Made by a program: the position numbers and the translations under genes | Shown: positions 483 through 45,473 of the stretch, one piece after another | Position numbering within the stretch: position 1 is the first letter of the stretch | How the letters are laid out: each line of letters opens with the position of its first letter | The notes under the pieces: model-generated | Seen by the model: the letters and a program-made list of their open reading frames with translations, nothing else | Told to the model about the DNA's origin: nothing | The model's database searches: none | Assembly (NCBI GenBank): GCA_002104905.1 | Contig: MCFE01000677.1 | Coordinates: 1-47,045, forward strand | Length of the DNA stretch: 47,045 bases | From: Basidiobolus meristosporus CBS 931.73 | Taxonomy: Eukaryota; Fungi; Basidiobolomycota | Direction of reading: 5' to 3'

Positions 483-1019
483 ATGAATTTCTTCACAAAC
501 ACTATACTTGCATACAAAAAGATACGTAATACTACTCAGAACTACGTCGAAGTGAAGCCCTCGACTGAAATCACTTGCCCGTTTGAAGATCAGGGTGATT
601 CACCGGACTCAGTGAGCCAGGAAAAAACCATACTTGACATACTAGGGGAGGAACGGGTGGAGAGGATTGTTGAGAGGTTCTATCATTATAACCTTACTGA
701 TAAGAATACCAAGGCTTTTTTCCAGGGAATCAATGTGGAGCGTTTACAGAGAATGCAAACCAGGTTTCTTGTCCATTTGTTAGGGGGGAAGGCCATCAAT
801 ACACGTAAGATGAGAGCCGCGCATAAGCGTTTACTGGACCTTAACGATCGACACTTTGATGCGGTTTTGAACAACCTGAGGAAGGCCGTGTGGGATATGG
901 GTATAAACCGGGAACTAACCAAGAAAATAATGGCTGCTGCAGAGACTACCCGAGACGATGTTCTTGGTAGGACACCGTTACCCAAACGGCAACCCTGCGA
1001 TGACCCTGATTTCGACTAG
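483..1019 (+). CDS. Group 1 truncated (2/2) haemoglobin, trHbN/GlbN-like, single exon
   Basis: 178-aa ORF with the group-1 2/2 globin pattern: TILDILG, IVERFY (B9-B10 FY), FF at CD1, RLQRMQTRFL (E helix), LGG, MRAAH (proximal His F8), HFDAV, RDDVLG. TATA-like TATAAA at about 431. Confidence 0.88.
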   Translation: MNFFTNTILAYKKIRNTTQNYVEVKPSTEITCPFEDQGDSPDSVSQEKTILDILGEERVERIVERFYHYNLTDKNTKAFFQGINVERLQRMQTRFLVHLLGGKAINTRKMRAAHKRLLDLNDRHFDAVLNNLRKAVWDMGINRELTKKIMAAAETTRDDVLGRTPLPKRQPCDDPDFD

Positions 1020-1939: not shown

Positions 1940-3028
1940 TCAAGCATCTCGTTGCCGTTTTGCAACAGGCGAACAGCATTCACCTTCTCCCGAGTTGTAT
2001 AGAAAATCGGAGGAGGAGTTGGTCGATGTGGTGCCTGGGTTCGTTGAGGAATGCAGCCATGCATCCTCCTCAAGCAACCACTTGAAATCAAACCCAGTTG
2101 TGTCTGGCATGGTGACTGGTGATAGAGGAGTATACTCCTCCCCAATGATCCCGGAAAACCCATTAACTGACAGGCTTTCTGTACCAAATCCCTTTCTCTG
2201 GGGCCTGGGCAGAGGGGAGTTGTTGATGGGGCCACCACCTTCGTAGCCCGGATAGTGCGGGGTGGATTTGCTCAGTGTGGGGATAGGAAAATAAGGATTC
2301 ATGAGATTGAGATGTGAAGTAGAGGGGATGAAGTACGGCTTCATGGCTGAGTTGCCCAGGTGATCTAACATCTCATCACAGTTCTGTCTCTTCAACGGGG
2401 ACCCCTCAGTGGCAGCAGTATCGATCTCTGAGGAGGGAGAATGCTTCCGTTTGCTCTTACTACGGTTGGGGCTGTATTTGTAGTCGGGGTACTTTTGCTG
2501 GTGGTCAAGCTTGATCTTTTCAGCCATCCACTGATACTTCCGCTTCTCTTCTACCGAGATATTCTTCCACATTTTCCCAATTATCCGAGATACTTCCATG
2601 TTGGTGATACCAGCGTTGGAGGCGAAGATCTCCGACTGCTTGTCACGGCGAAATAGGAAGAAGCAGTTGGCAGGCCGTGGGATTTTCGCCTTCTTTGGTT
2701 CAGAAGAGGCCTCTTCGGTTTCTTGTTGTTCGGAATGGACAGAAGTGGAATCGAAATTGCCATCTGGCCCAGGAGACACAAATTGTCGGATAGGTGGAGG
2801 GCTCATCATGCTTGGATAGAATGGGTCGTGGGGATGGCTCGGCTGTTGGTAATAAATCTCCTGTGCTTGATATGGGTTTTGGTACATAGCGTAAGGGACA
2901 TTCTCAGGCAATGAGGGATGGTAGGAGTGGGGCTGAGACTGGGACTGTGCTGTGTGGTTCCGAGACGAGGGATGAATCATATTTTGGGGGGAGTAGTCAT
3001 CGACTGTGTATAATTGTTGAGTCTTCAT
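1940..3028 (-). CDS. HMG-box transcription factor A (MATA/SOX-TCF class), single exon
   Basis: Complete HMG box at about 2468-2686: KIPRPANCFFLFRRDKQSEIFASNAGITNMEVSRIIGKMWKNISVEEKRKYQWMAEKIKLDHQQKYPDYKYSP. Q/P/Y/H-rich N-terminus, S/T/P-rich C-terminus. Confidence 0.92.
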   Translation of the reverse strand: MKTQQLYTVDDYSPQNMIHPSSRNHTAQSQSQPHSYHPSLPENVPYAMYQNPYQAQEIYYQQPSHPHDPFYPSMMSPPPIRQFVSPGPDGNFDSTSVHSEQQETEEASSEPKKAKIPRPANCFFLFRRDKQSEIFASNAGITNMEVSRIIGKMWKNISVEEKRKYQWMAEKIKLDHQQKYPDYKYSPNRSKSKRKHSPSSEIDTAATEGSPLKRQNCDEMLDHLGNSAMKPYFIPSTSHLNLMNPYFPIPTLSKSTPHYPGYEGGGPINNSPLPRPQRKGFGTESLSVNGFSGIIGEEYTPLSPVTMPDTTGFDFKWLLEEDAWLHSSTNPGTTSTNSSSDFLYNSGEGECCSPVAKRQRDA

Positions 3029-4648
3029 GGGCTGTCTATGCTATGATAGGAGAGGGGCTCGGATATGTATATCTATATATACGGATTTTGATGGAGCGCA
3101 ATTCAGGTGAGGATGTGTGCACTCGAGGTAGGCCTGGCTTAGCTTTTATAAAATCTCCCCTTGTGGTGTCCGATCGGAGAATTGATCCCAGCAATTCTTA
3201 CTGATGAATTCTCGTGGTTGTAGACAGATCTCTACACTAAGACGTGGCAGCATACCTTCGGAAAAGTTATTGTCGAGCGCTCTTTACTTCCTGCCTGGAA
3301 TTCAGTTTAATCCCCGATGCTGTAGGTCGCGTAGACTGGCCAGGCCTGCCTGCATCGGATTTGCGAGTATTCTTGGCTGGGATTTGGCGCGCTGGCTCGT
3401 CCAATGAACGGGTGCAGAAATCATGGTGGTTGCGAGCAATTTAGCGGAACAAGGGATTCTAGAGGCGATCGGACAGATCAGAACTCCGACTGTGCTTACC
3501 CAGTTCAAATTCACAACCATACATGATTGTTTGTTCACAATGGCAGGCCTGTGGTTAAATGGGTGATTAAGTTAACCGGCTGGCCACGCTCGTGGGCATT
3601 TAGTTTAATTCTTAACCCACCACTTCGAACACCCTTTGCTGAGGCTTCGCCACAGCAACACGGCTCAATTCTGGCCCTGGCAGTAGTGCACCCGCCCGCT
3701 AAACATCCAAAATATTCGGCTCGGATAAATCCTACACAAGGATATTTACCCACGTTGTTCTTCATCCCGACACTATTGATTACTCAAGCGTATGATGCCA
3801 CCACGTTTAGGGCGGCCGTCAGTCGACGAGGTTGACTCGGCATCTTTGAAACCTATTACGTATCTCGTCTCGAATTCAATGTGCGGGTGGTACCACTCAA
3901 TTGAGATCCGAAATCACCAGCGTCACCCTATCACCACATACTTTTGTAGCCGGACATACTGAGCAGGCCAAAATTGGGGTTCGGTTGGACACAGATATGC
4001 GAGATTCTAATGACAGGCATTGTGGGTCATTCAACTCCATCAAGTGCCAGCATGGAACTCATGCAGCCGCCAGAGGCTGGCTTGCGGTTGCTAAGGATCA
4101 TTTGTGGGCTCATCAGCAGCGTTATGTGAGGCTAGCCATCTCATCATCAGCAGCTCTTGATCACTACCTGAAATGACATGTAGACATGTGCAATGGATCT
4201 AGCTATGGAAATTCCCCCGGCGCGTGAGTAGGTATCCGCGGATTCCGCTCAATAGCAATCTCAATTTGAAACTGTCCCGCTTGACAGATGGAGTTAGTGG
4301 TAGCGTACCTCTCGATGTCGCCTAAAAACAAGTTTCACCCGGATTTAGAGTCAGGTTTACACAAGCGGTCCTTTCAAAAGAGCCTATCAAGTGATGATAT
4401 GAAAAATCATCGTTTGATGCAATATTGTATTTGGCATATAGCATAGAACGAATAAGAGCTTGTGACAGCTTTCTGGCCCAATCTCCTATTTCTGTAGAAT
4501 ACAGGTTATTGTATTGCCATATTATTCTAGCCTCCAGGCAATTCTGAGCGGCACGTAGGATATAAATATCTTCGCCGGTAGAATCCTCTCCCCTGCTTAC
4601 TACTTCGCAAGCTTTCCTGTCTCCTCTCTGTAACGTTTCTTTTTCAGA

Positions 4649-6620
<1,972 letters not shown>

Positions 6621-6981
6621 TTACCCCTCATTTTCCAACATTCGTCATGTCCGCAATTGCATCCATCTCTGACCATCATATCATATCCCCTTCGAGTCAA
6701 GTGATCCCACCTGTCCATCCACATTTGTCAGTCAACAATCCATAATAAACCCAACATACAATAGCAAAACCTCTCAGACTTACTATCATGCTAGATCACC
6801 GACCAATTGACAGGTGGTGACGCTTCGTTTCCTTTGGAACCTCGCTTTATTCCGAATGAAGCAAAGAAAACAAGTCACAAAACTCAATGTCATCAATGTT
6901 GGTTTATGTAAAAAAGAGCAAGGAAAGGAATGGAAAAAGGTAAAGGCCGCTGTAAAGTTTCAAGTAATCTTTGTGGGGGGG

Positions 6982-9900
6982 TCACTCCTCATCCTCATCC
7001 TGATAGTACTTCTTGAATTCGTTCGCTTTCCTTCTCGCGTTATTCAATTCTTTCTCGAGTTTAAGGATGGTCACTTGCTGCTCCATCTCCCGCAGCTTGT
7101 GGTCCTGTATCGACAGCTTCGATAAGTCCAAATCTTTCTCTTCTTTTCTACGCGCGGTGAATGCTTTGACAGCCTTGACAACATCGCGGGATGCATCGGT
7201 CACTGCACGTGATGCCAACTCCAGATTCTCCTGCGTCTTGGAATACATGTTGGCCTTCACACGAGCTGCAGCCACCAATTGGGCAGTTGCGGTGGCGACA
7301 TCGTTCGATGCATCAATCAACTGCTCAAGAGTATGAGTGCCTCGGATCACCCCATTGGCAACTTCAACAAGGGTGTTGGTTGCAGAAGAAACTCCTCTAG
7401 CAGCCGACACAAGCCCCTCAGTCCAACGGTTGTTCTTCTTGTAGTAAGCATTTTTGGACAAAGAGCCACGACCTTGGTCAACGATTTCTTGTTGGGAGGC
7501 GTGGGCGCAACGAACCAGGTTGACAATAGCCCGGGTCATAGCCGCAGCGGTGTCAAGGAGAGCATTGTGGATCTGATGATCTTCGCTAGACACCTCGGCT
7601 CGTTTGGGCTCATTGCGAAGATTCGAGAGTTTCTCGGTTGCATCTTCAACGGTGCGAGCAGCATTCAACATTTCCCGCTCAACTAAGGCAGCCAAGTCTT
7701 CCTGCCCTGCGGTGTGAGAATCCTTCGGTAGAAGCGCTTCAATCAGCTGAATTAGTCTGTTCAAGGTCACCTGAATATCATTGTTGCCTTTGGCGATCTC
7801 GTCTGGCCGATTGGTTTCGGGAATAGACAGGATGTTGGTAGACAACATATTGGTGAAAAATCCTTCTGCTGCTTCCGCAGAATACCTCCCAGATCGAATG
7901 ATTTCTTCCACCTGATCATCCTCGTCGGCAAGGCGAGTTACGCCCTTGACGTTGTCAAGAAGTTGAGATACCGCTTCGGCAAAGGCAGTGGCAGTATTGA
8001 TCACGGAGATCTGATCTTCAAAGTCCGTCAAGTACTGCAAGTAGCTAATAGCAAACTCGCTGGATGCAATGTATGCGCGTTCCACCATCGAGAGGACGTA
8101 CTGTGCAGTAGCAGATTGGTTTCCTTGCGTGGCGGGCGAAGTGAGCTCGAACGCGGCATCGTTCAACTTTTTGATACAACTACGGAACACCGAATCTTGA
8201 GTAAGGCGATTAGAGTCAAGCATACAGCCGTTCATATAAATCTCAATGCGACGTACCTAAGATTGTGTGAAGCTTGCTGGTTTGCTCTCCCCGAAGTGCA
8301 TCAACGCGTTTCTGAAGCTCGGACTCGGTAGCTGAGGATGTCTAGAGGCCATATGGAAAACAGCTCAACACCATTATTTGAACAAGTGTAGCAAATGGCA
8401 AAACTTACATCCTGTAACTCCGCCAATGCCATCAGGCTTTGGTCCATCCCCGCTTGTAAAATAGCAATCTCCTCCTCCTTAGCCTAATAAACTGCTTTAG
8501 CTAGCTAAAGATACAAAGGTTAATCTACCTAATGGCTTACCGCTGTTGCCTTATCTAGTTCATTTTTAACAATCTCCCAATCTCTAGCGATTCCTTCCTC
8601 AGCTTCACGTTTGTCCTATAGAGAAGGTACAATAAATCAGTGGTTCTCAAATTGCGGCATAAACTACATCACTAACACGAAGGACATCCTCCAGCTCCCT
8701 CTGCTCTTGCTCAAATCTTCTGCGCATGTCAGCCAATTCCCCACCAGCAGACTTTAGACAGGTTAGAATTCATCATTCGCTAAGCACTGTATTGCAGCTA
8801 TCTACCTCCATTAATTTCTCAATCTTAGCCTTAGAGTCATCCAACTCGCGCTTCATTCGAGTTAACTCCCCAGAATCAGCCTAGCATAGAATATTGAGTG
8901 ACGAGCTCAGTAAATCAATAGTTGCTGATAACATACCCCGCGTAGACGTTCGAGCTCATCCTTAGCCCGATCCCGCTCCCGAATCATATCCATTAGCTCG
9001 GTATTTTTTGCCTAGGCACAGATGTTTAGAACACTTGCCAGAACTTTGTGCATAAATCGACTCTAGCTTACTTTCAATTCAGACTGCATACGATCAAACT
9101 TATGAGTAGCTTCGGTGGCAGCATTAGCTTTAAGGTTGACTTGCTTGAGTTTCCCAAGAAGCTCAAGGTGCTCTTGACGGAGCTTGGCATAGATTTTAGC
9201 AAGAGCTTCGTACTTGGCTTTCCATTGAGCAATCTCATCTGTTTTCCACTTACGTGTTAGTAAAAATGCACAATGACGGTTTGATAAGTGAGAGCGAGTG
9301 CTACCTTGCAGCTGCTTTATCAAAGCATCAAGATCTCCGTCGTTTCGTTGATTCGCGAGGCCAAGTCTGGCCAATTCGTTTTCCAAGGCTTTGATTCGCT
9401 GGACACTCAAGATTAGAGATGTTACGAAGATACAGCTTACCAATACCTTTCTCTCACCTGGTCATATTGAGACATCAACATCATATCACGATCTTGCTGG
9501 TTACGATAATTCATGATTTCTTGCTCCAACTCATTGTATCGGTTTTGAGCTTGCTCTTGCATCTGTCTTTCTCTTAATAAACGCTGTTGCTCTTCGTATT
9601 CTTTTTGGAGTGCGAGTTGCTTCCTTTGTTCTTCTAAAGGATCTACTTTTGGCTCTTCGGGAGGTGGTGTAACATGACGAGGTGGCAAACGAGGGGCAGA
9701 GCTAGGACTTTGAGCAAGGAAATTTGGAGGATCCTGGGAAAATAAGCTCAATTGTTATTGAACCGCTTAAACTAGTATGAAGAAAAACCCACCTGGTCCA
9801 GTTTAGGGATAGCGATCAGACTTGTAAGATAACTGATATTTGAGCATTCGTAATAGAATTTCCTAAGAGCATAATGCTGGGCATTGAAACGTGCACGCAA

Positions 9901-10888
9901 AGGCTCCAACGGTTCGTGCGATTCGACACCTGGTACAATGTTGGGTTGCTTTAGTCGACAATACACACGCACCACCAATGCAAAAACAAATCCACTACTT
10001 ACGTCGATGCATCGCCATCAGCATTCTTGTTGCAAACTCGTAGATACCGTAGCTTTCTTCTACTAAAGGTACCAATGCAGAGATTCTGCACTCATTATCT
10101 GAAACGGGCCGGAAAGTCCGAAAGATTAACTTCTGGAATGTATCAATGCGATCTTGTAAATTCATTAAATCGGCAATCGTCTCGTAGCTACCGGGGAGTA
10201 TTCATATGAATGGTCAGGAACGCCCATCAAGGCCAAATATCAAGTACTGGCACCAGCACAGGCAAATAAACTTACCCTTCGTTGGGATCGTCGACACCTT
10301 TGACACTCACGTAATCTTCATAATCGAAATTTCCATTAAACTCGGGATGCAAACGGTGGTATTCGAGCTTTGCGATGATGAAATCAACATATGCTCGGAT
10401 AAGAACACCATAACCCTTAAAGCTATCTTGGGAGAACGACTGACTTAAAACCTCAAGAAAGCCAATCTCGTTCATTGCTTCACGTAAAGTCTGAACAAAA
10501 GTGTTTTTAGAAATCTATGGCAGCAGTTGATTTTTCAAAGGGAGCTAGCACTTACCACTGGGTGTCCACCACGAATGACTTTGTGGATGGTAATCAGAGC
10601 TTTAAAGCACTGCACTTCATCGGCCAGCAATGGCTGGACCTTTAACCCCATCCAAAAGGATTGCGAACTCTTGGCATCCCACGTATATACGATGCAACCT
10701 TCACGACGACATATAAGTAATTTTGCTCGGTGGTAGACACAAAACGTAAGGACCAGCTTAGGACACAGCTACTTACTTCTCACGTGCTTCTGTTTGGGTG
10801 CAGTCTCATCCGAGTTCACAGCCTTTTTAATGTTCATGGCGAGCTCTTGCTCGACCTTGTCTCTATCCGAATGACGGTGGGTAGCCAT
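6982..10888 (-). CDS. SLA2: Sla2/End4 (HIP1R family) endocytic actin adaptor, multi-exon
   Basis: N-terminal ANTH exons (MATHRHSDRDKVEQELAMNIKKAVNSDETAPKQKHVR; YHRLHPEFNGNFDYEDYVS), central coiled coil (WKAKYEALAKIYAKLRQEHL), C-terminal I/LWEQ domain (WTEGLVSAARGV...ATAQLVAAARVKA...QVTILKLEKEL). Confidence 0.95.
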
Positions 10889-11098
10889 CTTGTGCTTTGG
10901 CAATTAATGTAGACAAACTCGAAATATACAGTTGAATAATCACTTGCGTTGACGAAATTATCCTTCAAGATATCTCGAACAATCCAATAACATTCATATG
11001 GTTGATTTTGCGCATAAGTAAGATCACCTGATGATATCACTCGTACAGTCACAGTGATTTTCAAATATGCAAGCAACCTGAAAAAGGACTACGTTTAC
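10889..11098. promoter_or_regulatory. Short shared (bidirectional) promoter region between SLA2 and MDM35
   Basis: The two ATGs (10888 minus, 11099 plus) are head-to-head and 210 bp apart. Confidence 0.55.
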
Positions 11099-11329
11099 AT
11101 GTCTTCTCCGGAGCCCCCTTCAGAGTTCGACAAAGATTGCAGTCAACTGGAAAAGGCGTTCAACGCCTGCTTTGAAAAGTGGTATTCGAAAGAGTTCCTG
11201 AAGGGCAACACAGTACCCGATCCGAATTGCGAGAGGATTTTCAGAGAGTTTATTAGCTGTGCTAGTGTACGTGCCATATGCTCTTTGCTTGTAACTGATG
11301 TCAGGTACCCTAGCAAAAAGCCAGAGTAG
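11099..11329 (+). CDS. MDM35: Mdm35/TRIAP1 twin-Cys mitochondrial intermembrane-space protein (3' exon structure unresolved)
   Basis: CSQLEKAFNACFEKWYSKEFLKG...CERIFREFISC has twin CX9C motifs and the family CFxKWYSExFLKG pattern. Likely GTACGT donor after 11266; last exon not resolved. Confidence 0.75.
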   Translation: MSSPEPPSEFDKDCSQLEKAFNACFEKWYSKEFLKGNTVPDPNCERIFREFISCASVRAICSLLVTDVRYPSKKPE

Positions 11330-12030
11330 CTAATCCTGTTGTTGAAGCATTCACCACCCCCTAATCTCAGAGAAACAAGCCTACATAAAAAAGCAAATAC
11401 CAACTGTAGTGGAAAAAACCTATATCCAAGCATGCCTTCCGTAACGAATAATCGCTTACGAATGTATGCTCTATACTAGTCGAAATCTGAAACACATAGC
11501 GACCACGCTGCCTATGCCTACCCCCTAGCCACTATCTCCACCACATATGCCAGCAAGTCTAGGAATAAACTGGCAGATAATACACCCATTGAACCACGTT
11601 CAAATAACTTCGGGGTAATTTCTCGGCTGGAATGGTGATATTCTGGATGATTGAATACCAGAATATTCTCTGAAAAGAGGGAAAATCTCGGCGTATTAAG
11701 AGTCATCAGTTTGTGTTGATTGGTTTAAGGTTTTTTTTTGGATTTCTATATTCATCCAAATTACCATTAAGACATAGCGGATCCTGTAATCTTGATCTTT
11801 ACCACATTTAATTGGTGAGATAGGGATCTTTGTTGTATAACTCATACCGAGTATGGACCCTTAGAGCCAATATATAAAGCCAATCTGGGTCCTCACCAAC
11901 AGTAGAATTCTTCCCTAATTTTGTCTTTCATCATTAAACACCCGTTGTAAAGTATTCAATTGCGCACAGCACATCCAGCTGCTAATATCCTGCACTCCAA
12001 GATATTCTTGTGCATAAGACATCCCCTCTC

Positions 12031-12825
12031 ATGAGTGGCATTCCCCCCATCAAGTGTTTCTCTGGTGTTCCAGAATTTACGGTGAACTATTTACCGAACC
12101 AACCACCTGTTGTCTCTCGACCCAAGGAGGATTCCATATCTCTGGAGTTCGCTTTGGAGGAGTCCCCGGATTTTTTCAATGATTTCAACTCTAATGGCAC
12201 GCAAACACGTGAATCAACTGGCTCGATACCCGAAGAAGGCGAGTTCTTCTTCGTACCTAACGGATTTGTCCCGGTTTTGATGATGGACTCTATAGCCTCA
12301 GTGGTTGAGTATAACCTACCCCCCGAGGCAATCCCACTGAACCATCCAGTCTGGGTGCCTCATGACTATCCACTTCCTGCAAGCCTTTCAAAGAAGATAT
12401 GTCCAATCGCGCCCCCCCTCGCTGCTGTTCCTAAGATTCCACCCAAGGTCATAAGAAAAGAGAAGACCCCTCGTCCTACCAACGCATTTATCCTGTTCCG
12501 GCGGGAGAATCATGGAAGAATCTTCCAACAAAACCCACATCTCTCTAACAACGATGTGTCCAAAGCATTAGGCAAGGAGTGGAAAGAACTTCCGGAGAGT
12601 GAGAAGGAGGTATATCGTCGAAAGGCTCGCAGCCTGCAACAGGAACATCAGGAAAAGTACCCCGACTACAAATTTACCCCTCAGCAAAGCCGCCGCAAGC
12701 GTGTTCGCCCGATTAACGGTAGCGGATTGAGCCAGGAGCAGTCTGATGTTGTATCACCCCCGTCGAGTGGTAACCAGAATTCATTCCATATATTCTACAT
12801 CCCAAAAGTTGCGAATCTCAGCTAG
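12031..12825 (+). CDS. HMG-box transcription factor B (MATA/SexP-SexM-like class), single exon
   Basis: Complete HMG box at about 12469-12681: PRPTNAFILFRRENHGRIFQQNPHLSNNDVSKALGKEWKELPESEKEVYRRKARSLQQEHQEKYPDYKFTP, followed by basic RRKR. TATATAAA at 11871. First in-frame ATG at 12031. Confidence 0.92.
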   Translation: MSGIPPIKCFSGVPEFTVNYLPNQPPVVSRPKEDSISLEFALEESPDFFNDFNSNGTQTRESTGSIPEEGEFFFVPNGFVPVLMMDSIASVVEYNLPPEAIPLNHPVWVPHDYPLPASLSKKICPIAPPLAAVPKIPPKVIRKEKTPRPTNAFILFRRENHGRIFQQNPHLSNNDVSKALGKEWKELPESEKEVYRRKARSLQQEHQEKYPDYKFTPQQSRRKRVRPINGSGLSQEQSDVVSPPSSGNQNSFHIFYIPKVANLS

Positions 12826-14239
12826 GATTTGTTTTGCATATCCGGTTCATCATTTCATCGATTTCCAACTTTGGAAAGTATGTTGCAAGTAATAATTAGT
12901 CAGATGCTTGATGCTTTTGTATCTATTCCATCTCCAAATCTCTATTGTATAGAAGTTCATTCATGCCATCCGTATATCAGTGTCTGTAAATGAATATGTT
13001 GTTAGTGCTGTAAGTAAAGAATCCCTAATGTTTATTCGGTATTAAATGAATTCTGGAATGTAGCCAAATGAGGTATCATTGATCAAACCATGTTACACCA
13101 CACTGTGGGAAAATCAGGGATATCCCATGAAAATATTGGGTTTGTGCTGGCAAATGGACATGCGCGGGTGAGCTTAAAGATGGCAACGAACATTCCACCG
13201 TGGCCAATGGAGCCATAAACGCTCTATTGTCGACACAGTAGTTAGCCACCCTTTGAAAAGATTTGGCAATTGTGTGGCCAGATGCCCCCGGAAGCATAGC
13301 GCATCACTAATAGCTCGTACGATCGAAGTGGCTATAAAGATTTCCTGTTAGCGGTCCAGGAGAAATACCTTACTAATCCGGTAACATTGAGTACATATCA
13401 CCTGCTCCTGTCCATCGGTTCCACATTGCATGAGATTGCTTGGACGCTTGGCGCTTCATTGGTTCCAGTGGACACAACAGGATGGAATCAACAAAAACGA
13501 GGACAGGTGATGCCGGGGATGTCCAATCAACAGCGAGTTAGATGTGGAGTCTGCACCGCCCGCTAAATAGTGCCAGACAATGACCGTGAGGCTTTGATGG
13601 ATTACCATCCAGGTCCCAAATGACGGATACACACCGGTGAAACAGGAGTGCCAGGGCTCAGAGGGGTGGAATCTAGCTGCCATTCGCACATCGGTGGTGG
13701 CCAGCGCTTCGCTCCAGACGGAGCTTTATTGGATGTGCAATATGTTTCTCCGTTCCCAAAATAAAGTCTTTGTGAGGGAGCGTTACTAATTCAATCTAGA
13801 AATCGATACAGAGCACCGATTTCACTGCACAGGAAACGATCACTCATAATGAGTAACACAGAATAACTGCTGATAAGCTATTAACAAGTCACTCGCTGGC
13901 AATGAGTCTCGACTGACAACCACCGCCAGATCTGGATATTTGATCTTCGAAAAGAATCGAGATAAGAACTCACCCATCTCCCCTGGTTTGAGGCCCATGG
14001 TGGGTTGGTGAAAAAATCATGTGCGTATCGGTTTTTCTGTATTCAAATGGATAGTTGGTCGAGGGGAACAAAACCGGAATACAAGGGGATGGGTGAGGCA
14101 GGCAAGTGGGTGAAGGGGTACATCGAAAAGAAACGGGGAGCATTCGAGCGCACGAAGATGACGGCCTGTTGAGCAGTGCCCAGGTGAATCATATCAAGAA
14201 CCGTAGGTACATAACGCTGGGGTGCTCGGGCCTAAAGAC

Positions 14240-14722
14240 TTAATGAAACAACGCTCTTTCTTCGCTGCTGATCTGTTGCCAGATACTCATGATGATACGC
14301 GACGCCTCATCCCCATATATCTTACACTTGGCCAGCTCCACCATCTTGATGGCGTAGAAATTGGAGTATCCGCGCTGCATGCCTTCTAGCTCAGGTCCGG
14401 AGGGGGGAGCTTCCGAAGCGACGTATTTGCGAATCTTGGTGGGCACGTGTGCACTCGTTACTTGATTGGGGCCTTCTGGAGGCAAGTATGCAGACCATGA
14501 GGTTGCAGAGTCGTTGTACCCGTTTTTCGCGAGCTCGAAAAGCTTCTCCTCGCCGATCAACAACGCGCGATAGCCGCGAGGAATATAGTAATATCTACCC
14601 TCCTGGCGCTCCGAAAGGAGAGCAGTGACGTGTGAGGGAGGGCGGGAGATGGTGAGACTGACGTTCTTCTTGATCTGGCATTGTATTCCGCTAGATCCGG
14701 CTAATGCGGTTTGAGTATTCAT
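14240..14722 (-). CDS. ORF C: divergent, C-terminally truncated HMG-box-like protein, probable paralogue of HMG B
   Basis: C-terminus QRGYSNFYAIKMVELAKCKIYGDEASRIIMSIWQQISSEERALFH* aligns to HMG helices 1-2 (EASRIIMSIWQQISSEERALF vs EVSRIIGKMWKNISVEEKRKY of HMG A, 10 of 21 identical). N-terminal EGRYYYIPRGYRALLI matches EGEFFFVPNGFVPVLM of HMG B. Helix 3 is absent, so it may be a pseudogene. Confidence 0.6.
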   Translation of the reverse strand: MNTQTALAGSSGIQCQIKKNVSLTISRPPSHVTALLSERQEGRYYYIPRGYRALLIGEEKLFELAKNGYNDSATSWSAYLPPEGPNQVTSAHVPTKIRKYVASEAPPSGPELEGMQRGYSNFYAIKMVELAKCKIYGDEASRIIMSIWQQISSEERALFH

Positions 14723-15357
14723 GGCTTGGTTGGCGTAAACGGTGAGGAAAGGAGTCCTTAGGAATGGGGATTTGAGGATTTGTACAGTGATGGTGGATCC
14801 AGCTGTAGTGCAAATGCAACTTTCAGTTTGAGGAAACTCGTTGCATGCGATTTGTTATTTATAACAAATGGAGTTTCCGTCAAGATGGCTTTCATGGATC
14901 TTTCTCTAAACCGAATCCATACTATTACCATAGTCGGCCATGGAAATACTGGTTCGGATAATCATGGAATTGCATTCGATGGGTGGTGATGGCATTTGTG
15001 ATAGAGCGGAGTGTCCCGCTTTTCGAGCACAGGGTAACCAATGGGGGTAGATGAAGGGTTGCTAATTCTGGCCATGTTTGTTGGCTACTTCATGTGACAC
15101 TGGATGCTACGAAATCAGTTATTAAACGACCCACCGAGGTATTTGCCATTCCGGCACACCATCTCTCAGTTATTAACCACTCTATCGAGGTGCTTAGCAT
15201 CATGGCAAAATAACTCATTTTATTGTTCGATTTTATATTCAGTGTTTAGAGACAAGGGAAAAGAAATCATAGAACAGAAATTTACTGACCCTCAGATTAG
15301 AGTCTGTCCGTCTTACAGACATATCCGTCTGAAATAGATTAACCTAGGTAACTAAAC

Positions 15358-16827
15358 TTAGTTGGCCTCGGGGGATCGTCTAGGCGATGCGGTTTCACGG
15401 TTGTTTGGTGAGATGCTGCGACGAGGAGAGTGGTCGCGCTTAGGAGAGCGGCTGCCACGAGGGGAGTGGTCACCTGAGTTGGGCATACGAGGTGATACAC
15501 TGCGTTCGCCAGAGCGAGATCTTCTACGAGAAGTACTGCGTGGCTTGGGAGACCTGCTTAATGAGCGGCTATATCTAGAGCGGGAGCGAGAATTGGATCG
15601 GGAGCGTGAGCGATATCTTCTGGGTGATCTGCTGCGTCTAGGAGAGCGAGATCTAGAAGAGGGTCTTCCACGAGCGCCGCCTCCACCCCTTCAAAGTGAA
15701 CTCCAGTTAGATCTCTTGTAAAGTAAAGGTTGGTGATAATTGTTAGGCCATGAACACAAGTTCAAAATAAACCATTACAATCCCATAGTGAGAGCTAACA
15801 ATGAAACGTTCAATTACCGGCAATCCCGAGCTTTGTGGCCAGTTTCACCGCAAGAGCTAATAAAAAGAATGTGAATCATTGAGCCATCGAAGAAAATGAG
15901 TTGAATAGCCGTACAAACAGCGGTTCTCTTCGTATCTACATAGGGTCGGTTAGCTCCATGTTATCCACAACATAAATACGCGAAGACGACTTACCTTCTG
16001 GAACGAACACCTCTGAGTAAGATGGAATATTCAAACAGTTAGTACTCCAATCATGGATATTTTAATGAAGCTACAATCTCACCTGCCAGGTGGGTCGGGA
16101 CAGTCTCTGGCCCTATGGAATGGTAGATGTGTCAATTTAGCATTACATTTAGATCAATGCCGCTTAACCTGCAAACGGGCCAGGAACAATATACTAACCA
16201 ATGACCTACAAAAACAATCCTGGTTAGCTCACTATATCCAGACCATGAAGAAATAAAATCTGCTCTTGGTAGATGCATTGCATACCGCTATTTCCACAGT
16301 TGAAGCAACGTTCACCGCCTTTTTCTCTTTCCTCGGCACGACGGCCGCCCTTGGCAGCTTCGACGATGATTCTCTCACCTTCTAGCTTGTAGCCATCCAA
16401 AGCTCTAACGGCATCATCGGCATCTGATACAGAGGGGAGAAGTTAAGAACCATTCGGAGGGAAGTGCCTGTCAACAAAATAGTACCTCTATCGTCGTCGA
16501 ACTCGATAAAGGCAAAGGAGCTCTACAAAAGTGTTAATCATAAAACACGGGATAAGGCAGTGCTGAGATATATACCTTCATGTCAATGCGTCTGACTCTA
16601 CCATACTTGGAGAACATGTCATCTAGATCACGCTCGCGGACATAACGCGAAAGGTGACCTAATAAAATAAGAACAACGGATCAGTATTGTTAAGAACGAG
16701 TGATGAAGGATCCGACAAACTAAAAGCCATGGCAAGCCAAAAAGGTGTCAAGGCCATCGATCTACCCACCAACATAAACTCTAGTGTTGCCACGACGACG
16801 ATCTTCTCTCGAATCGTAATTTGACAT
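15358..16827 (-). CDS. SR splicing factor: RRM + two CCHC zinc knuckles + RS/SP domain (SRSF7/RS2Z-like), multi-exon
   Basis: Spliced reading MSNYDSREDRRRGNTRVYVG HLSRYVRERDLDDMFSKYGRVRRIDM..SFAFIEFDD..DADDAVRALDGYKLEG, then CFNCGNSGHWARDC and CFSCGETGHKARDC, then an RSRSP/RSP repeat tail ending RRSPEAN*. Confidence 0.9.
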
Positions 16828-17561
16828 TTCCTTTTCAATTATCTTCTTGAGTAAAAACCGCAAAAAGACTAGTGGATACAGAAAGACTGAATCTCGAAGA
16901 GGGATTAAAGGAGTGGACAAAAAGTAATAGTCCTATAAACCGATGTAGTTGAGATTGTTTTTCTTAGCCTCGAAAACCCATATTACTCAACTTTTTCTCT
17001 CATCACCTGACCCGGGATGAAGAAATTAGCGCATTCACCGAAATTTTCAACAGGTGATGATCGCTTGATAGAAGCGCTTCTGGAGCAGGACATCCGCTTA
17101 TGCCCTGATGTGGTTACTCTCTGTAATCAAGCCCCTATGTAGATGGCTTAGAAGGAGAGCCTCCCTTCCTCTAATCACACATTCCTTCCGGCCAAAAGAT
17201 CATTTTCTTCTATACATGCCATCAGCATCCGCATCACCAACAGCTCGTATTGGTCGCAAGCTGCGCTAGCAATACGAATCTCACTGTTTTCTACACTGCG
17301 TCGCCAAATAGCATGTATTTTGACTTCATCCAATAAGGGCGTTTCGTGGTATGGAATTTGCTGAATGGAAATGTGGAGGGTTACTCTTGGTCCATATTTA
17401 GAAAAGCTGAACATCAAATTTGTCATAATCTTCTGTTCAAAAAAAACTCACTTTAACAAACGTTTATCCCCCATTCCTGTCTGCACTTCTTTGAGTGGTG
17501 GTTTTATCATTAAGTTGACTTTACGGAAACCTGACTGCGTTTGCTAGCCTGTTAGTCTTCA

Positions 17562-19239
17562 ATGGTCGATTCAAAGGCTGACACTCCGAAACATGAGACA
17601 ACCGACCATAATGGGTTCACTCCCAATATGGTCCCGAAATATTCGGATGACATTGATCCTACACTCTCGTTCTTTTGTAAGTAATGCTTTGCTCTTTTCC
17701 CACAACTGCTCTCTCAAGGCTTACAATTCCCGCCGCAGATTCCTCTAAAACCATCAGCCTCTTGATCTTTATGCTGTTCGTTTTACTGTACGTGGCTCTG
17801 GGGTCAAATTCTCAAGATACCGTAGGAAACATCAAAATGTAACGACAGTTTGTTTCTGATAAGTACATGGCGAAGGCTAATCGAGTATCTAGGGGTATTT
17901 TTTCGGCTGCGATAGTCTTCATGTTCATTGGTTTGGTGCAATTTGGAGACGGTGCTTTCATTAGGCCTCATCCTGCACTTTGGAGAATCATTCTCGCTGC
18001 CAGCGTTTTGTATGAGATGTTCTTGGTCTTTATTTTATTCCAGGTATGTCCTTTTTCTAACCTGGACCAATATCAACCGAAGAGTTGTATCGTCTAAATC
18101 AATTTATTCGTACACGCACACAGAATGCCACAGACGCACGTTCGTTGTTCAAGTACATTGATCCCTCTCTTGGCACTCCGCTTCCAGATAGATCCTATGC
18201 AGAAAATTGCGAGTTTACCGTATCCAACATTTGGGTAGGAAAGGCGAGAGACATAAGTGTGGAGTCTTGTATTAACCTATAACCCAACCTCTAGAATTCC
18301 ATGGATGCTTTTGTTCTAGCGCACTCGATCGGCTGGTTCTTCAAGGCGATTATTTTACGTGATTACTGGTTTTGCTGGATCCTCTCTATCATGTTCGAGT
18401 TTATGGAATACTCCTTGCAGCATCAACTTGCCAACTTTGCCGAATGTTGGTGGGACCACGTAAGAATATACAATAGCATGGTGGTTATGCCAATGTGCCT
18501 CCAAGCTAATAGAGTGAATTTCTAGTGGATTTTGGATGTCCTCGTCTGCAACTGGCTTGGCACCTACGTTGGAATGAAGTTCTGTGAATATTTTTCGATG
18601 AGGGTGAGTTGTTATCTATTTCGTTGGTATGTGGTAATATGCTGATATATCATCACCAGCATTATTCCTGGAGAGGCATTAAGCAGATCCCTGACTATCG
18701 TGGGAAAGTCAAGAGAACTGTACAACAATTCACACCACATAGCTGGACAACCTTCCACTGGGGCGCCACTGAAAGCTTCAAGAACTACGCGGCGGTCATT
18801 GTGCTGATGATCCTCGCATTGATGTGTGAATTGAACGCATTTTACCTTAAAACATTGCTGTGGCTACCTCCGGAGCATTACCTCAACGTCTCTCGTCTCT
18901 TACTGTTTTTCTTCATGGCCACCCCAGCAGTCAGAGAACTGTACCAATATCTTATGGACAAGTACGTCATTCACAAACCTAACACCTACTTGAAGCGTAA
19001 CTAATTCTTATATCCCAACCAGAAATTGTAAACGTGTTGGCGCACAGGCATGGCTGACCATTGCATGCATCATGACCGAAGCCCTCATCATCCTGAAGTT
19101 TGGCCGCAACGAATTCCCCAACCCTGCACCGATGCACATCAAGATCTTCTGGGTCATCTTGCTTAGCTTGGTTGGCATATATCCGGTGTGGCAATTTTTG
19201 ATCAAACCTAGACTAGAGAAGGCTGAGAAAAAGGATTGA
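17562..19239 (+). CDS. Phosphatidylserine synthase, base-exchange (PTDSS1/2) type, multi-exon
   Basis: Exons encode [100 protein letters not shown]: the PSS (PF03034) family motifs. Confidence 0.9.
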
Positions 19240-19621
19240 CCTTCTTCAACTTAACCCTTCTTCCTTCCCCTCTATGCATTTGATCGCTCGTGATAGACCC
19301 ATCTTCTCGCTTGGCTACGGCCAATAACCCACCATGCACCATTTCTAACCCTCAGCACTAAGCCCACATCCCCAACCCTCTTCCATATTTCCATCAATAA
19401 ACAAGATTTCAGAACCGCAATCACAGAGCTGCACCCAATCTTCAGGGGATCATGGTCATCAATATTTCGGATGGTGTTTTTTTAGAGCACACCCCTGCTC
19501 ATCGAGCTCATTGTATTCGAGGAGAACGATCATAATTGATCGGGGGTTGATAAGAGACCACCACTTAGTGCGCTGAAAATCCCTCTTGATCCTTTAGGAA
19601 TTCATTCACTGGACCTTCAAC

Positions 19622-20160
19622 ATGGTACGTTACAGCCTGCAATTCCACGCATCCATCCATTCATCCATTGCAACCATTTGAACATTTTACTAATGCGCCT
19701 CGATTGACCTTAGGCCGATACTGAACAAAACGTTGAACTCAAGAAGAAGAGAACTTTCCGTAAGTACTCTTACCGCGGTGTTGACCTTGACCAACTTTTG
19801 GACTTGTCCAGCGAGCAATTCATGGAACTTGTTCACTGCCGTGCTCGCAGAAAGTTCAACCGTGGTCTTAAGCGTAAGCCAATGGGTCTCATCAAGAAGT
19901 TGAGAAAGGCCAAGAAGGAGGCTCTCCCCAACGAGAAGCCCGAGACCGTCAAGACTCACCTTCGTAACATGATCATTGTTCCTGAAATGATCGGCTCTGT
20001 CGTCGGTGTCTACAACGGCAAGACTTTCAACCAAGTTGAAATCAAGCCTGAGATGATTGGTCACTACCTCGGTGAGTTCTCCATCACCTACAAGCCTGTC
20101 AAGCACGGTCGCCCAGGTATTGGTGCCACCAACTCCTCTCGTTTTGTTCCTCTTAAGTAA
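19622..20160 (+). CDS. RPS15: 40S ribosomal protein S15 (uS19); ATG-only first exon, intron 19625-19713
   Basis: [21 protein letters not shown]...[69 protein letters not shown]. Confidence 0.97.
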
Positions 20161-20612
20161 ACAACTCAACTATAATAAATACATCACATTTCGTATTCGA
20201 ATTCTATCCATCCAACTCTGTACAAATCTGATTTCTGTGCTCCCCGCCTTGAGCAAAATAAACTGTTTATGCCAAATCTTCGTCGGCAATACCTTCATGT
20301 TGCTTGGCACAATGGGTGTTTATGTCCCACCACCAGCGCATTTGCCGCATAATGCACCGGTTCCTACAATCCTGACGATCTGATTGGGAAGTCGGAAAAA
20401 AAATTCCCATTTTTTTTTCGATATTTGGGCCTTTCCTCATGGTCCCCGAAAGATGTGATTACAAAAGCAGACCGTGGCCGGTAACGCCTCTTCCTTCTCG
20501 AATTTTCGTGTACTCTTCCTAGGGGTAAGATATACTTGGCCATCGATAGATGAATGCCAGCATTTGGTGGATGAGCATGCACTAACCAGCCTGTTTGACT
20601 TTAGAATTTAAT

Positions 20613-20942
20613 ATGCGTTACATTGCTGCCTACCTTCTCCTCACCCTCGGTGGTAACCAAACCCCCGCTGCTGCTGATGTTGAAAAGCTTCTCTCCTCTG
20701 TCGGTATCGAATCCGACTCTGAGCGCCTCAGCAAATTGATCTCCGAATTGGAGGGCAAGAACATTGAGGAACTCATTGCCGAAGGTAAGGAGAAGCTCGC
20801 TTCCGTTCCTTCCGGTGGTGCCGCTGCTGCTGCTCCCGCTGGTGCCGCCGCTGGTGCTGCTGATGCCGCCCCTGCCGCCGCCAAGGAGGAGGAAGCCAAG
20901 GAAGAGTCCGACGATGACATGGGCTTTGGTCTTTTCGACTAA
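20613..20942 (+). CDS. RPP2: 60S acidic ribosomal protein P2 (probable 5'-UTR intron 20525-20604)
   Basis: [15 protein letters not shown]...[15 protein letters not shown], Ala-rich hinge, C-terminal [13 protein letters not shown]. Confidence 0.97.
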
Positions 20943-21371
20943 ATACAAATCCCCTACCTTCGTACTTTCTATCTTGCTTAGCAACTATACATGGTGCCTC
21001 TAACTGTGCCCTGATCGTTGTGTAAACACAATAAACATTCAAACCAACTCGACCAATTCATTGTCACTTCATCTTCCTCCGGGAATGGGACTTGTTGCAC
21101 AGAGCAGCCTAGTCAGGCAACAGCGGAACTGATCCTTGTCGGCTTCAGCCAAATCTACAACTACCACTTGCTCGATGGCGACCGAGCAAAAGCCGTCACA
21201 CGAATCACAACTAGGGAAGGGATTTTTTTTTGACTTGGTTTCAACAAAAAAAATGGGAGTATTTGTGATTTTTCTTTATTTTCGTGGTTAGCGGGGATTT
21301 TTTTCTCGAGTTCTTGAGTAGTGACTTCCTGTAGCTTGGCTTCTTGCTGATTTCCCTTTGACCATACTCAA

Positions 21372-23452
21372 ATGACGACTACTCAACCCGCCAGCAATTC
21401 GTTTGCTAAGCGCTTGGCCCATACAGGTGATTTTCCGTTTCGATGCTTTCGTACCACTGACCGCTCGAAGGGCCCCAGTTATTTATCATTTTTCCGCCTC
21501 CGTTAGACAAAAAGATTCGCGACAAAGCAGTCAAGGCTCTTGGAAAATGGCTTAGTAGCAGGGAGGACATCGATCAGCTCGAGCTATTGAAATTGTGGAA
21601 GGGTCTCTTCTATTGTAAGTAAACTCTCAGCCCAGCCTGCTCCTTTTCTCGGCCTTGGTTTTAATCGGCGGTGCTCGGCCAGGTTTCTGGATGTCAGACA
21701 AGCCTCTTATTCAGCAGCAGCTATCCAACACTCTCGCCACCATGATCTTGAGTCTTCCCGAGAAAATCGCCATCCCGTTTGCCCAAGCTTTCTGGGAGAT
21801 CATTGTTAGAGAGTGGAACGGTATCGATCGCTATAGGTAGCTTCATGCAATCCGTATATTGTTGAGTCTTGGCGTTAATGTAATATCTCTCGACGTGGTG
21901 GCTAGATTGGACAAATTCTACCTTCTCCTCAGAAGATACGTCAACTCCACACTTACCCTACTGATGAATAAGGACTGGGATGCCGAGTTGGTGGAGCAAT
22001 ACGTGGAGATGATGAAGAGCGGTGTGTTCAAGTAAGTTTCTGCAGCAAGCAACAGCTCCGCAGAGAGCACCGGATTAACCCCTCTCAAAACAGCCCAAGC
22101 AACCTTCAAGTCCCCAATAGCGTCCGTACACACATAGCGGACTTGTTTTTGGAGGAGCTCGAGAAAGTAGTCCCTGCTGAGGTAAGATGCCCTCGGGCGA
22201 CCCTCGTCAACCCGGATTGGCACTGATTTTGCTTCTGTAGAAATCCCAGGAAATCCCAATGGAGAAGGTCTTGGAACCCTTCGTCCACTTCATCGCACGC
22301 AACCCCAATAAGCTAGTGTACACTCGTCTACAGGAGAACCTGTTCCAGCCCCTTTCGGAACGCATGCAGAATGGTAAATAATTCGGGTTCGTTTCATTTG
22401 ATTCGCTATCGTTTCTAATTTCTGTTGAAGAGGAGCCGGAGCAACATCGTTACAACTACGCGTCCATCATCGAGCTGCTCGCCGAACTGGCTGTTGACGC
22501 CGAGACTACTGGAATCAAACGCAGACGTATCAACCAGTTTTTGCAAGCTATTGGTGGAACTCCTGACGAACCCCAAGCTCTTAAAGATGACTCAACGGAT
22601 GTTGAAGAGCCGGAAAGCGTAGATGATGAGGTGGTGGAGCTAAGTAATGCCGACTCTAAGAAAAGAAAGAGACAGAAGAAGAGTCAAGACCCAATTGAAG
22701 CCCACGATGTTGCCGAAGTAGCCAGCGAGCCGGTCCAAGAGGGCAAGAAGAAGAAGAAGAAGCAAAAGGCTGTAGAAGAAATCCTCGAGGCCATCAGTGA
22801 GCCAGTCCAGGTAGAAGAGCCTAAGAAGAAGAAGAAGAAGCAAAAGGTGGCTGAAAAAACAGCAATCTCCGAGCCCGTTGAGGTTGCTCAGCCCGTGAAA
22901 GTCAAGGCTAGCAAGAAGCCAAAGAAGCAGGTGGTTACCGAGGAAGCTGTTGAACCTATGGTCGTTGAAGAAGCCGCCACTACCGAGGAGCCAGTAGGAC
23001 GATTTTATATCATGATTATAGTGTGTCCAGCTTTTAACCGGGGGTATCTTAGGTCAAAAAGACATCCAAGAAATCCAAGAAACAGAGGGTTGTCGAACCT
23101 GAAGCGACGGTTGAGACACCCGAGGTGGAAGCACCCGTCAGTAGCTCAAGCATTGGACTACTACCATCTCCCTATTATTAATTGTCATTGTTATAATTAG
23201 GCCAAAAAGTCCAAGAAAGTGAAGGCCGAGAAGGAGGTGACCCCCAAATTGGCAGAGCCATCAACTCCACTTTCTAGCGCGTCAAAGAAATCCGTTCAAT
23301 GGGGATTGGAAAACAACTCGGTGAAGAGATTCAAGAAGCAACTCCCCGTTTCCCCCATGCCATCTCCAGTCGCTTCCGATAGAAAGCCCATCAAGAGCGC
23401 GTTGAAGAAATCCAAGCGATCTGTCGCCGCCACCCCCAAGTCATCCATATAG
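21372..23452 (+). CDS. RRP1: rRNA processing protein Rrp1/Nop52 with K/E-rich tail, multi-exon
   Basis: FAKRLA, RDKAVKALGKW, LLKLWKGLFYC, FWMSDKPLIQQ, FWEIIVREWNGIDRYRLDKFYLLLR; low-complexity KKKKKKQK tail and a terminal KKSVQWG...PIKSALKK segment. Confidence 0.92.
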
Positions 23453-23765
23453 AATGTCCTCTTAATTTCCTGTTTATTCGATCTTGATTATATCAACTTT
23501 CCCCTTATGATTTATATCCATGCCTTTACCATAATCATAATCCGAAGCCATCTTTACAAAGTTGAAAAGGAGTAAAAACTGCTAGATTATTTTCAACTGC
23601 GCAGTTCAGATGCGTTAGGTGTCACCAAAGGGTAGATACTCCCTTGAGGTCCACTATATCAATCTACGCCGATTAGTGACGGTAGAAGCGTTGAGTTCCC
23701 GGGCCCTTACCCCTAAATAGCTCTCTTGCTGCTCACCATCTGCGATGATGAGAAAAAACCGATGG

Positions 23766-31611: not shown

Positions 31612-32889
31612 TCAGGGGGATTTCTCTAATAGCGACTGGAACCAAGGATCCCAGAACATCTCTTCGACAGAAGGACGTTCGGCCGGATTGGGGTTCAACA
31701 TTGAGCGGATAAGAGGCAACGTATCGGATGGAATATTTCTGAAGAATTCATCTTCGTGACGATGCTTCAGAAAATTGGCGTATGCGCGGTTGGTGGGACG
31801 GGCAATCTCCCAGGGGAACTTGCGAAGAACCATGCACACGTACACAATTGCCAGCGACCAAATATCTGCTTTCGCTGGGTCATAGGGGGAGCCCTCGTGA
31901 ACTTCAGGTGCAATGTATGGGTCGGTCCCGGTTATAGATGTGGCGAGCTTACGCTTGCGGCTAAGCGAGTCGCCGAAGATAAATGCACAGCCGAAATCAA
32001 TCAACTTGATTAGCCCGTCTTCCCCAAGACAGAAATTTTCTAGTTTCAAGTCACGGTGTGCAATACCGCGCTGATGCAAATACTGCAGAGAGTTTACCAT
32101 CTGCACGAAATAACGATTGATCTGATGCTCGCCCATATTCACCCCTTTGAAGAGGGCCACCATATCCATTGAGCAAAACTCCATCACCTGGTGGATTTGA
32201 CCATCTTCTAGAGCCACGTCGATGGTTTTAATGATGTTAGGATGGTCGAGCGAAGCACCGATGTAGATTTCATTGCTGATGATCTCGTAATAATGTCTTC
32301 TCCCCTCAGACCCTCGAATGGGACGAAAAGTCTTGATCGCAAACTTCCCTCCACAAGCCATGGAATAAGTGGAATAGACCCTCCCGCCTGAACCCGAGCC
32401 CAACATCTCGGAAAAGGAGCCGTAAAGCTCGACAAGCGAAGGCTGGTTACGGCTCTTCAAAGCGATGATCAGCGGAAGATCATCTACCACTTCCTTCTTG
32501 AGCGGTCTCTTGTGGAATTTAGTTTTCAGGTGGGTGGAAAGCCGGGGCCCTCTTTGTGTTTTCCTCTTTGGATTCTGGATGGCTGAAAAAACAAATCGAC
32601 GGGAGATCTGAGACAGCTCTGAGATATCAACTTTAGTAACCTCCGAATCCTTGAGCGACTCGTCTGAGGTAAGGGTCGAGAATGTAGATAGTCCATGGGC
32701 GACAGGGAGAGTAAAGTCGGTGGTTGCTTCGAAGTGAAAGGTGGAAAGTGGATCTTCGTTGGCCGATACGAGGAACGGTTTCTCCTGGTAGAGACTTTTA
32801 TCAGAAGATTCGGGATAGAGCATTTTCCTTGATGCCTGACGGTTGAATATGCTGATGATTAGCCGTGGTCGACGTGGGTGTCGATGCAA
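31612..32889 (-). CDS. Ser/Thr protein kinase, fungal Npr/Hal (Hrk1/Sat4-like) family, paralogue 1, single exon
   Basis: GSGSGGRV, FAIK, ISNEIYIGASLDHPNII, HRDLKLEN, DFG, GTDPYIAPE, DPAKADIWS. The true start may be the downstream MLYPESS. Confidence 0.9.
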   Translation of the reverse strand: MHRHPRRPRLIISIFNRQASRKMLYPESSDKSLYQEKPFLVSANEDPLSTFHFEATTDFTLPVAHGLSTFSTLTSDESLKDSEVTKVDISELSQISRRFVFSAIQNPKRKTQRGPRLSTHLKTKFHKRPLKKEVVDDLPLIIALKSRNQPSLVELYGSFSEMLGSGSGGRVYSTYSMACGGKFAIKTFRPIRGSEGRRHYYEIISNEIYIGASLDHPNIIKTIDVALEDGQIHQVMEFCSMDMVALFKGVNMGEHQINRYFVQMVNSLQYLHQRGIAHRDLKLENFCLGEDGLIKLIDFGCAFIFGDSLSRKRKLATSITGTDPYIAPEVHEGSPYDPAKADIWSLAIVYVCMVLRKFPWEIARPTNRAYANFLKHRHEDEFFRNIPSDTLPLIRSMLNPNPAERPSVEEMFWDPWFQSLLEKSP

Positions 32890-45078: not shown

Positions 45079-45093
45079 GCAGAGACGGCACCA
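45079..45093 (-). promoter_or_regulatory. Gypsy primer-binding site TGGTGCCGTCTCTGC, probably tRNA-His
   Basis: Begins TGG 4 nt after the LTR end. TGGTGCC(G/A)TCTC is complementary to fungal-type tRNA-His 3' ends; tRNA identity is inferred. Confidence 0.6.
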
Positions 45094-45097
45094 AATA

Positions 45098-45473
45098 TGT
45101 GGGTTATTACTGACTGTACTTGGTGAGTGGAAGAGCTTGTAGGTCAGGTCAGTACCACTTGATTCACAATAGCTTCCAATAGAAGGTAGCAAGGTAATAA
45201 AGACTTGTGTTTATTCCGTCCAAATCCTCTTGTCCTCTCACTTGGTTCAATTGGGTAGATATATATATCACTTGGGGGGCTTAGATAATAGACAATGTGT
45301 TCTAAAATAGGGGTGTGACCACCTTCCTGTTATGGTAAGTGTTCTAACTAGATGAGGGCAGGGATAGGAGGGAGGGCGCATGGGGGAATCACAGGGAGGA
45401 TACTGGGGGACTTTGGGTAGGACTCTGGGGAGAACTCTTGGGCAAAGAGTGGGTACTGCATTTAGTACTCACA
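45098..45473 (-). repeat. 5' LTR of the gypsy element (376 bp)
   Basis: Bounded by TGTGGGTTATTACTGACTGTAC and GTACTGCATTTAGTACTCACA (imperfect inverted termini, TG...CA). Its 45098 end matches 39760-39783. Confidence 0.8.

Follow-up and report, generated by a model that had tools for sequence, protein, structure and literature searches.

A 47,045-nucleotide stretch of Basidiobolus DNA (contig MCFE01000677.1, here called the window) carries two convergent genes beside SLA2: HMG B, a high-mobility-group (HMG) box gene, and ORF C, a short open reading frame (ORF) on the opposite strand. Our comparisons support the view that HMG B and ORF C are ancient paralogues. On balance, we lean toward an explanation of the whole in which the two descend from a common ancestor, form a convergent pair on the SLA2 side, and ORF C acts as a partner or competitor that does not bind DNA and works through a motif found in both proteins. 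HMG B is encoded by a single exon at 12031..12825 on the forward strand (264 residues plus the stop codon) and ORF C by a single exon at 14240..14722 on the reverse strand (160 residues plus the stop codon). Their stop codons lie 1414 bp apart, which agrees with the tail-to-tail arrangement and the 1.4-kb spacing given in a first-pass annotation of this DNA, where the two genes were also described as sharing an N-terminal motif.

The motif lies exactly where that annotation had placed it, at residues E69-M84 of HMG B (12235-12282, +) and E41-I56 of ORF C (14602-14555, -). The cores, 16 residues long, sit within slightly larger blocks. The B-family block (residues 68-86; 12232..12288, +) is invariant in six B-family genes, and the C-family block (residues 40-58; 14549..14605, -), which gives reciprocal matrix matches with the B family, contains eight positions (G42, Y45, P48, G50, Y51, R52, L54 and L55) that are invariant in five members. 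The reported distances to the HMG box are also close to those found here, the motif starting 77-78 residues before the Pfam HMG_box start in HMG B and 72-76 residues ahead of the HMG-like stretch in ORF C. Little other similarity had been described between the two proteins, and BLASTP indeed matches the motif segment alone (23 bits, E 0.002). For the single pair of sequences the ungapped score is 43, with a modest shuffle P of 0.008.

Against shuffled controls, the likeness holds at the level of the two families. A profile-profile comparison scored 48.5 against 21.6 +/- 3.1 for 20,000 column shuffles (P about 5e-5), its best segment pairing B 68-86 with C 40-58. The gapped form of this comparison, run on enlarged alignments, gave 45.5 against 20.5 +/- 3.0, with 17.9 for the reversed control and a maximum of 30.7 for block-shuffled ones, and hhalign aligned the two family motifs over 21 columns with a P of 7.5e-4. 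When the 19-column matrix of each family was run over the window and five related loci, each read in six frames (254,716 positions), members of its own family scored 81-92 and were followed by every member of the other family at 43-54, the best unrelated match reaching 24.8. HMG A, a full HMG-box gene of the same window (1940..3028, -; Pfam HMG_box 6.8e-21), lacks the motif, as previously noted, since its best matrix scores are only 8.6 and 11.6 against the 43-54 of true cross-family matches.

At the DNA level, the motif is identical between HMG B and ORF C at just 29 of 57 nucleotides and is therefore held by protein-level selection, not by recent gene conversion. This low identity, together with the lack of inverted repeats, rules out both recent gene conversion and an inverted duplication at the DNA level. 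The starts of the two motifs (12235-12255, +; 14582-14602, -), with acidic residues and then aromatic-x-x-[VI], resemble what we take to be the loose Atg8/LC3-interacting pattern. Downstream of the motif, both families have a small conserved LPPE block (window 12316-12327, +; 14474-14485, -), preceded directly by Tyr in C and by Tyr-Asn in B. We considered this block as a second common mini-motif and rejected it: its score of 17 is within noise, and it falls on diagonal 16 as opposed to 28 for the motif.

A second likeness is found at the end of ORF C, where residues 112-160 (14243..14389, -) form an HMG-like tail that appears to cover helices 1 and 2 and to stop 8 residues into helix 3, as it does in all five members of the family. 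Of the HMG box that had been implied for ORF C, only the first two helices and the opening turns of helix 3 would thus be present. The last 50 residues are the best-conserved part of the protein, and the tail matches helix 2 of HMG A in BLASTP (E 8e-4). The second-best segment of the B-C profile comparison is the HMG helix 2 region, collinear with the motif; hhalign aligns the tail to HMG boxes over 27 columns (P 4e-4, probability 35%), and MAFFT does so with a two-residue gap only. The AlphaFold2 model of ORF C is confident in the tail alone, with a predicted local distance difference test (pLDDT) score of 86-89, and its residues 112-160 can be superposed on SOX17, SRY, SOX30, SSRP1 and other boxes over the first 47-49 residues of these. 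These superpositions (VIA-align, Z 4-5.5, root-mean-square deviation 1.9-3.3) are weak when taken alone; HMG boxes fill the top ranks.

The tail appears to match the canonical HMG box (PF00505) in the register of helix 1 and helix 2, in the Ser and Trp that are conserved, and in the acidic character of the beginning of helix 3. It differs from the canonical box in that the basic N-terminal strand (RPxNAF) is replaced and the remainder of helix 3, including its YPxYKY end, is missing. It is also acidic, with a charge of -2 to -5 and an isoelectric point (pI) of 4.5-5.2, in contrast to charges of +10 to +13 for the B and A boxes, and it lies under the Pfam threshold, the HMG_box profile giving no match up to an E of 1 for whole ORF C or of 10 for the tail. 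ORF C therefore does not have the three-helix, L-shaped HMG fold in which a basic N-terminal strand packs on helix 3. Because most of helix 3 and the positive charge have been lost, ORF C most likely cannot bind DNA as an HMG box does. Two of the three HMG helices appear to be kept under strong constraint, and the tail itself must therefore do something.

ORF C is predicted to be a real gene under purifying selection. Homologues, which the first-pass annotation had suggested seeking in relatives, are present and at SLA2 loci always stand beside an HMG B homologue; those in B. meristosporus and B. ranarum are 160, 158 and 160 residues long, with 88%, 61% and 56% identity, and in B. ranarum two ORF C homologues have locus tags adjoining those of two HMG B homologues. 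Between the window and the B. meristosporus copy, the proportions of nonsynonymous (pN) and synonymous (pS) differences are 0.060 and 0.343, with a nonsynonymous-to-synonymous rate ratio (dN/dS) of 0.14 and a Fisher P of 4e-13 from approximate site counts. Comparisons that are saturated give a pN of 0.22-0.25 and a pS of 0.74-0.79. The stop codon is at an identical position in four orthologues and within one residue of it in the more distant paralogue P0009. We considered whether a missed 3' exon might complete the HMG box, and discarded this possibility: likeness to the B. ranarum sequences goes no further than the stop codon, no splice donor is conserved, and the downstream frames differ among species.

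The family to which ORF C belongs appears to be undescribed and confined to Basidiobolus, and to be a truncated derivative of the HMG box. ORF C has no match in Pfam or NCBIfam and nothing meaningful among PDB sequences, where the matches to anillin and SRP14 (E above 0.1) amount to noise; ESM Atlas feature searches with ORF C and with the HMG B N-terminus returned scores that were all below 0.9 and thus unusable. With the C-family profile, HMMER was run exhaustively against 1.84 billion representatives and matched only the C cluster and P0009 of B. ranarum (145 residues, E 2e-20), apart from an 1811-residue protein matched in five stretches (E 7e-4) that is presumably spurious.

The partner gene, HMG B, is predicted to be a SRY/SOX-type HMG-box regulator of the SRY/SOX/MAT class. 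Its box (residues 146-214; 12466..12672, +) has a net charge of +10 and a pI of 10.3, covers model positions 1-69 of 69 in Pfam HMG_box (E 1.2e-24; 86.9 bits against a cut-off of 25.4), and has SRY and SOX as the nearest solved structures (1e-17). Its 45% identity to HMG A is confined to the box. Four B. ranarum proteins, 190-273 residues long, align collinearly with HMG B, which has a dN/dS of 0.05 against B. meristosporus, where an intact ORF of 265 amino acids (locus L001:11929-12723, -) is 93% identical to it. The public B. meristosporus model of this gene is only 72 residues long and was therefore missed by the protein word search. Word searches with HMG B, whole or N-terminus, found matches in Basidiobolus only, those with the N-terminus in B. 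ranarum only, and the closest relatives of both proteins come without exception from B. meristosporus or B. ranarum.

Two further observations concern the B family. An invariant C-terminal block, FHI-YIP, lies at window 12781-12810 (residues 251-260) in a predicted strand and resembles the aromatic-aromatic-[IV]-P core of the motif; as an internal second copy of that core it did not reach significance (P 0.06). One B. ranarum locus has a longer C-B spacer, which contains a 219-residue ORF (L003:2161-2820, +); part of this ORF is loosely similar to the B motif block and to the NLPPE-IPLNHPVW block that follows it. The suggestion that this ORF is a decayed B-like relic was likewise not significant (hhalign P 0.32).

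The ancient paralogy put forward in the first-pass annotation gains support from two collinear similarities, one in the motif, with an hhalign P of 7.5e-4, and one in HMG helix 2, where P is 4e-4. Their spacing is nearly equal in B and C, with diagonal 28 for the motif as compared with 34-36 for the box. The two genes are also neighbors, each under purifying selection, and common ancestry thus accounts for these facts most economically. B and C separated far earlier than the duplications inside each family, and no trace of the B-C duplication is left at the DNA level. It could instead be supposed that two unrelated genes gained the motif independently as a short linear element, for instance to meet the same partner, and the fact that only about 20 columns align outside the box, with no extension in the gapped alignment, is what such an origin would give. 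We think this improbable, since the second-best segment is HMG helix 2, in the same order and at near-equal spacing, since the genes stand side by side, and since a separate origin of a 16-19 residue block with at least eight shared positions is itself unlikely. Chance resemblance between unrelated sequences is scarcely credible. The single-pair P is only 0.008 and the match was noticed post hoc, but the family-level profile, matrix and hhalign tests contradict chance, and the decisive point against it is the invariance of the block within each family, in six B-type and five C-type genes.

A different kind of objection would be that an HMG gene was duplicated and that ORF C is what is left of one copy, a pseudogene fragment in decay, with the motif as a leftover. 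The truncated box and the lack of a Pfam match would fit such a history. The selection data already contradict it, however, with pN below pS both in the closest comparison and in the saturated ones. The frame is intact, length and stop codon are shared by four copies, a fifth paralogue has the same architecture, and the truncated tail is the very part of ORF C that is best conserved. We therefore regard decay as very unlikely.

Common ancestry suggests a model for how the pair might work. A single ancestral gene would have carried an HMG box and, about 75 residues before it, an N-terminal motif of strand-turn-strand form. In Basidiobolus, its descendants HMG B and ORF C would have stayed together next to SLA2 as a convergent pair. 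HMG B would have stayed a complete, basic, SRY/SOX-type DNA-binding regulator, and ORF C would have retained the motif and the first two HMG helices while losing most of helix 3 and the positive charge. The motif is probably a protein-protein contact, because it is the only block outside the box that both families have kept. It may take the form of a strand-turn-strand element: the low-confidence AlphaFold2 model of HMG B, which at a pLDDT of 39 offers a secondary-structure hint only, has strands at 70-76 and 79-84 around the P-x-G turn. Lacking a DNA-binding box, ORF C would therefore act as a small partner that pairs with B-type proteins through the hairpin, or as a competitor for a common partner, and would in this way tune the neighboring HMG regulator.

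Several observations weigh against this model. The hhalign probabilities are only 17-35%, the Foldseek E values for the HMG resemblance of ORF C are at least 0.48 and not significant, and the motif region has a pLDDT below 50 in the models of both HMG B and ORF C. In addition, solo paralogues of both types exist. Two B paralogues of B. ranarum (L004 and L005) lie away from SLA2 and from any C gene, and the C paralogue P0009 (B. ranarum L006:7328-7765, +), which carries the motif and the truncated end as in ORF C, is convergent with a C2H2 zinc-finger gene at a locus with no B-type gene. Thus, B and C genes do not in every case operate as linked partners.

We considered whether the pair might instead have its origin in mating type, B and C being former alternative alleles of an SLA2-linked mating-type locus that were joined in one haplotype when self-fertility arose, with the motif as a contact for heterodimer formation or for a common partner. 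This reading is compatible with paralogy, to which it adds a historical claim. HMG B is of the SRY/SOX/MAT class, both genes lie within the same flanks next to SLA2, which flanks the MAT (mating-type) loci of ascomycetes, and B has diverged from C to the extreme degree seen between idiomorphs. Entomophthoroid fungi have been described as homothallic (PMC3734969), and Basidiobolus itself is homothallic or heterothallic depending on species (PMC7466969). The class of HMG B, the adjacency of SLA2 and the reported homothallism make a fused locus with two specificities possible. Against it, both genes are present at all four loci examined, and no haplotype or species with B only or C only is known. 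The solo paralogues elsewhere in the B. ranarum genome weaken it further, since they indicate gene families and not a strict pair of alleles. ORF C, which had been put forward as a second HMG specificity gene, is a 160-residue protein with a truncated, acidic HMG remnant and no working box, and the link to sex is conjectural. We consider such an origin unlikely. The more specific proposal, that B and C are the remnant of a two-idiomorph, SLA2-linked HMG mating-type locus in a self-fertile fungus outside the Dikarya, with C as a second specificity factor contacting B by the hairpin, seems to us rather doubtful.

Comparison with described loci bears on the same question. As at the mucoralean sex locus (SexP/SexM), a SRY/SOX/MAT-class HMG regulator is found here in a small conserved neighborhood of a zygospore-forming fungus outside the Dikarya, and the two linked genes have almost no sequence in common. 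The mucoralean parallel that had been implied does not carry over, however: Basidiobolus stands outside the Mucorales, and in place of tptA and rnhA the flanks are SLA2, isocitrate dehydrogenase, an Mdm35-like gene and an SR-protein gene. Neither tptA nor rnhA is among the genes called within 10 kb on each side at the related loci L001 and L002 (NST, Nop52, two ribosomal proteins, phosphatidylserine synthase, an unnamed gene, SLA2 and isocitrate dehydrogenase), and the ORFs of the window agree. Also unlike the mucoralean locus, B and C occur in one haplotype in all three genomes, and C is not a full HMG protein.

The ascomycete MAT1 locus, where the HMG gene MAT1-2-1 and the alpha-box gene MAT1-1-1 lie next to SLA2 and fused homothallic forms are included in the comparison, offers a further likeness. 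There, as here, SLA2 stands beside an HMG regulator and a second, HMG-derived and highly diverged protein. In contrast to MAT1, no APN2 endonuclease gene is among the called neighbors at L001 and L002, and neither ORF C nor its tail has a Pfam match to the alpha-box (PF04769). Alpha-box proteins keep a three-helix domain, whereas ORF C terminates within helix 3. If the pair were indeed a two-idiomorph locus, it would be a zygomycete parallel to the HMG and alpha-box system of ascomycetes.

For the paralogue model that we favor, the nearest analogues are small dominant-negative relatives of transcription factors, such as the Id proteins that act against basic helix-loop-helix factors, and plant microProteins such as LITTLE ZIPPER. 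Like them, ORF C is a short paralogue with a presumed contact element, without a working DNA-binding domain, in the same genome as its full-length relatives: it has the common motif, a truncated acidic box, and 160 residues as compared with 264. The likeness is one of sequence analogy, and ORF C may belong to this type. If C modulates B via the motif, this would be control of an HMG regulator by a small paralogue, of which we know no fungal example. Our search of the literature found no paper that defines a mating-type locus in Basidiobolus or other entomophthoroid fungi. What the present analysis provides is a definite pair of genes conserved beside SLA2, one for a full SRY/SOX-type regulator and the other for a truncated HMG relative restricted to the genus, which have one strongly constrained motif in common. 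Should heterothallic Basidiobolus strains prove to have either B or C but not both, this would pinpoint the group's sex locus; should there be neither modulation nor one-gene strains, B and C would be an ordinary old duplicate pair.

The order of genes around the pair is HMG A (-), isocitrate dehydrogenase, SLA2 (-), the Mdm35-like gene (+), HMG B (+), ORF C (-), an SR-protein-like gene and phosphatidylserine synthase. Positions 4188-23594 of the window are collinear, at 83% identity, with B. meristosporus CBS 931.73 contig MCFE01000082. The tail-to-tail order C-B-SLA2 is found in all four loci, the window and L001-L003, which we count as three genomes. SLA2 (6982..10906, -, ends approximate) has an I/LWEQ domain (2.6e-48) and is collinear with the annotated ANTH and I_LWEQ genes of L001-L003. 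About 1.1 kb separates it from HMG B, and the small Mdm35-like gene (from 11054, +) is the only gene in this interval. The spacer between the convergent stop codons (12826..14239) is not conserved with the B. ranarum loci; it contains no Rfam family, structured RNA or notable repeats, and its counterparts in L001-L003 measure 1.35-2.3 kb.

Elsewhere in the window, an ORF for a bacterial-like (truncated) globin lies at 483-1019 (+), and an exon of a base-exchange-type phosphatidylserine synthase (PF03034) at 18609-19004 (+). To our knowledge, synthases of this type are unusual for Dikarya, and finding one here would be in keeping with a fungus of an early-diverging lineage. At 31612-32889 (-) and 34840-36039 (+), 2 kb apart on opposite strands, lie two ORFs for protein kinases, alike in size and perhaps derived from each other by duplication. 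Retroelement fragments, a piece of reverse transcriptase (-) and a copia-type gag ORF (+), are found at 42660-46458, in the window's lower-GC end.

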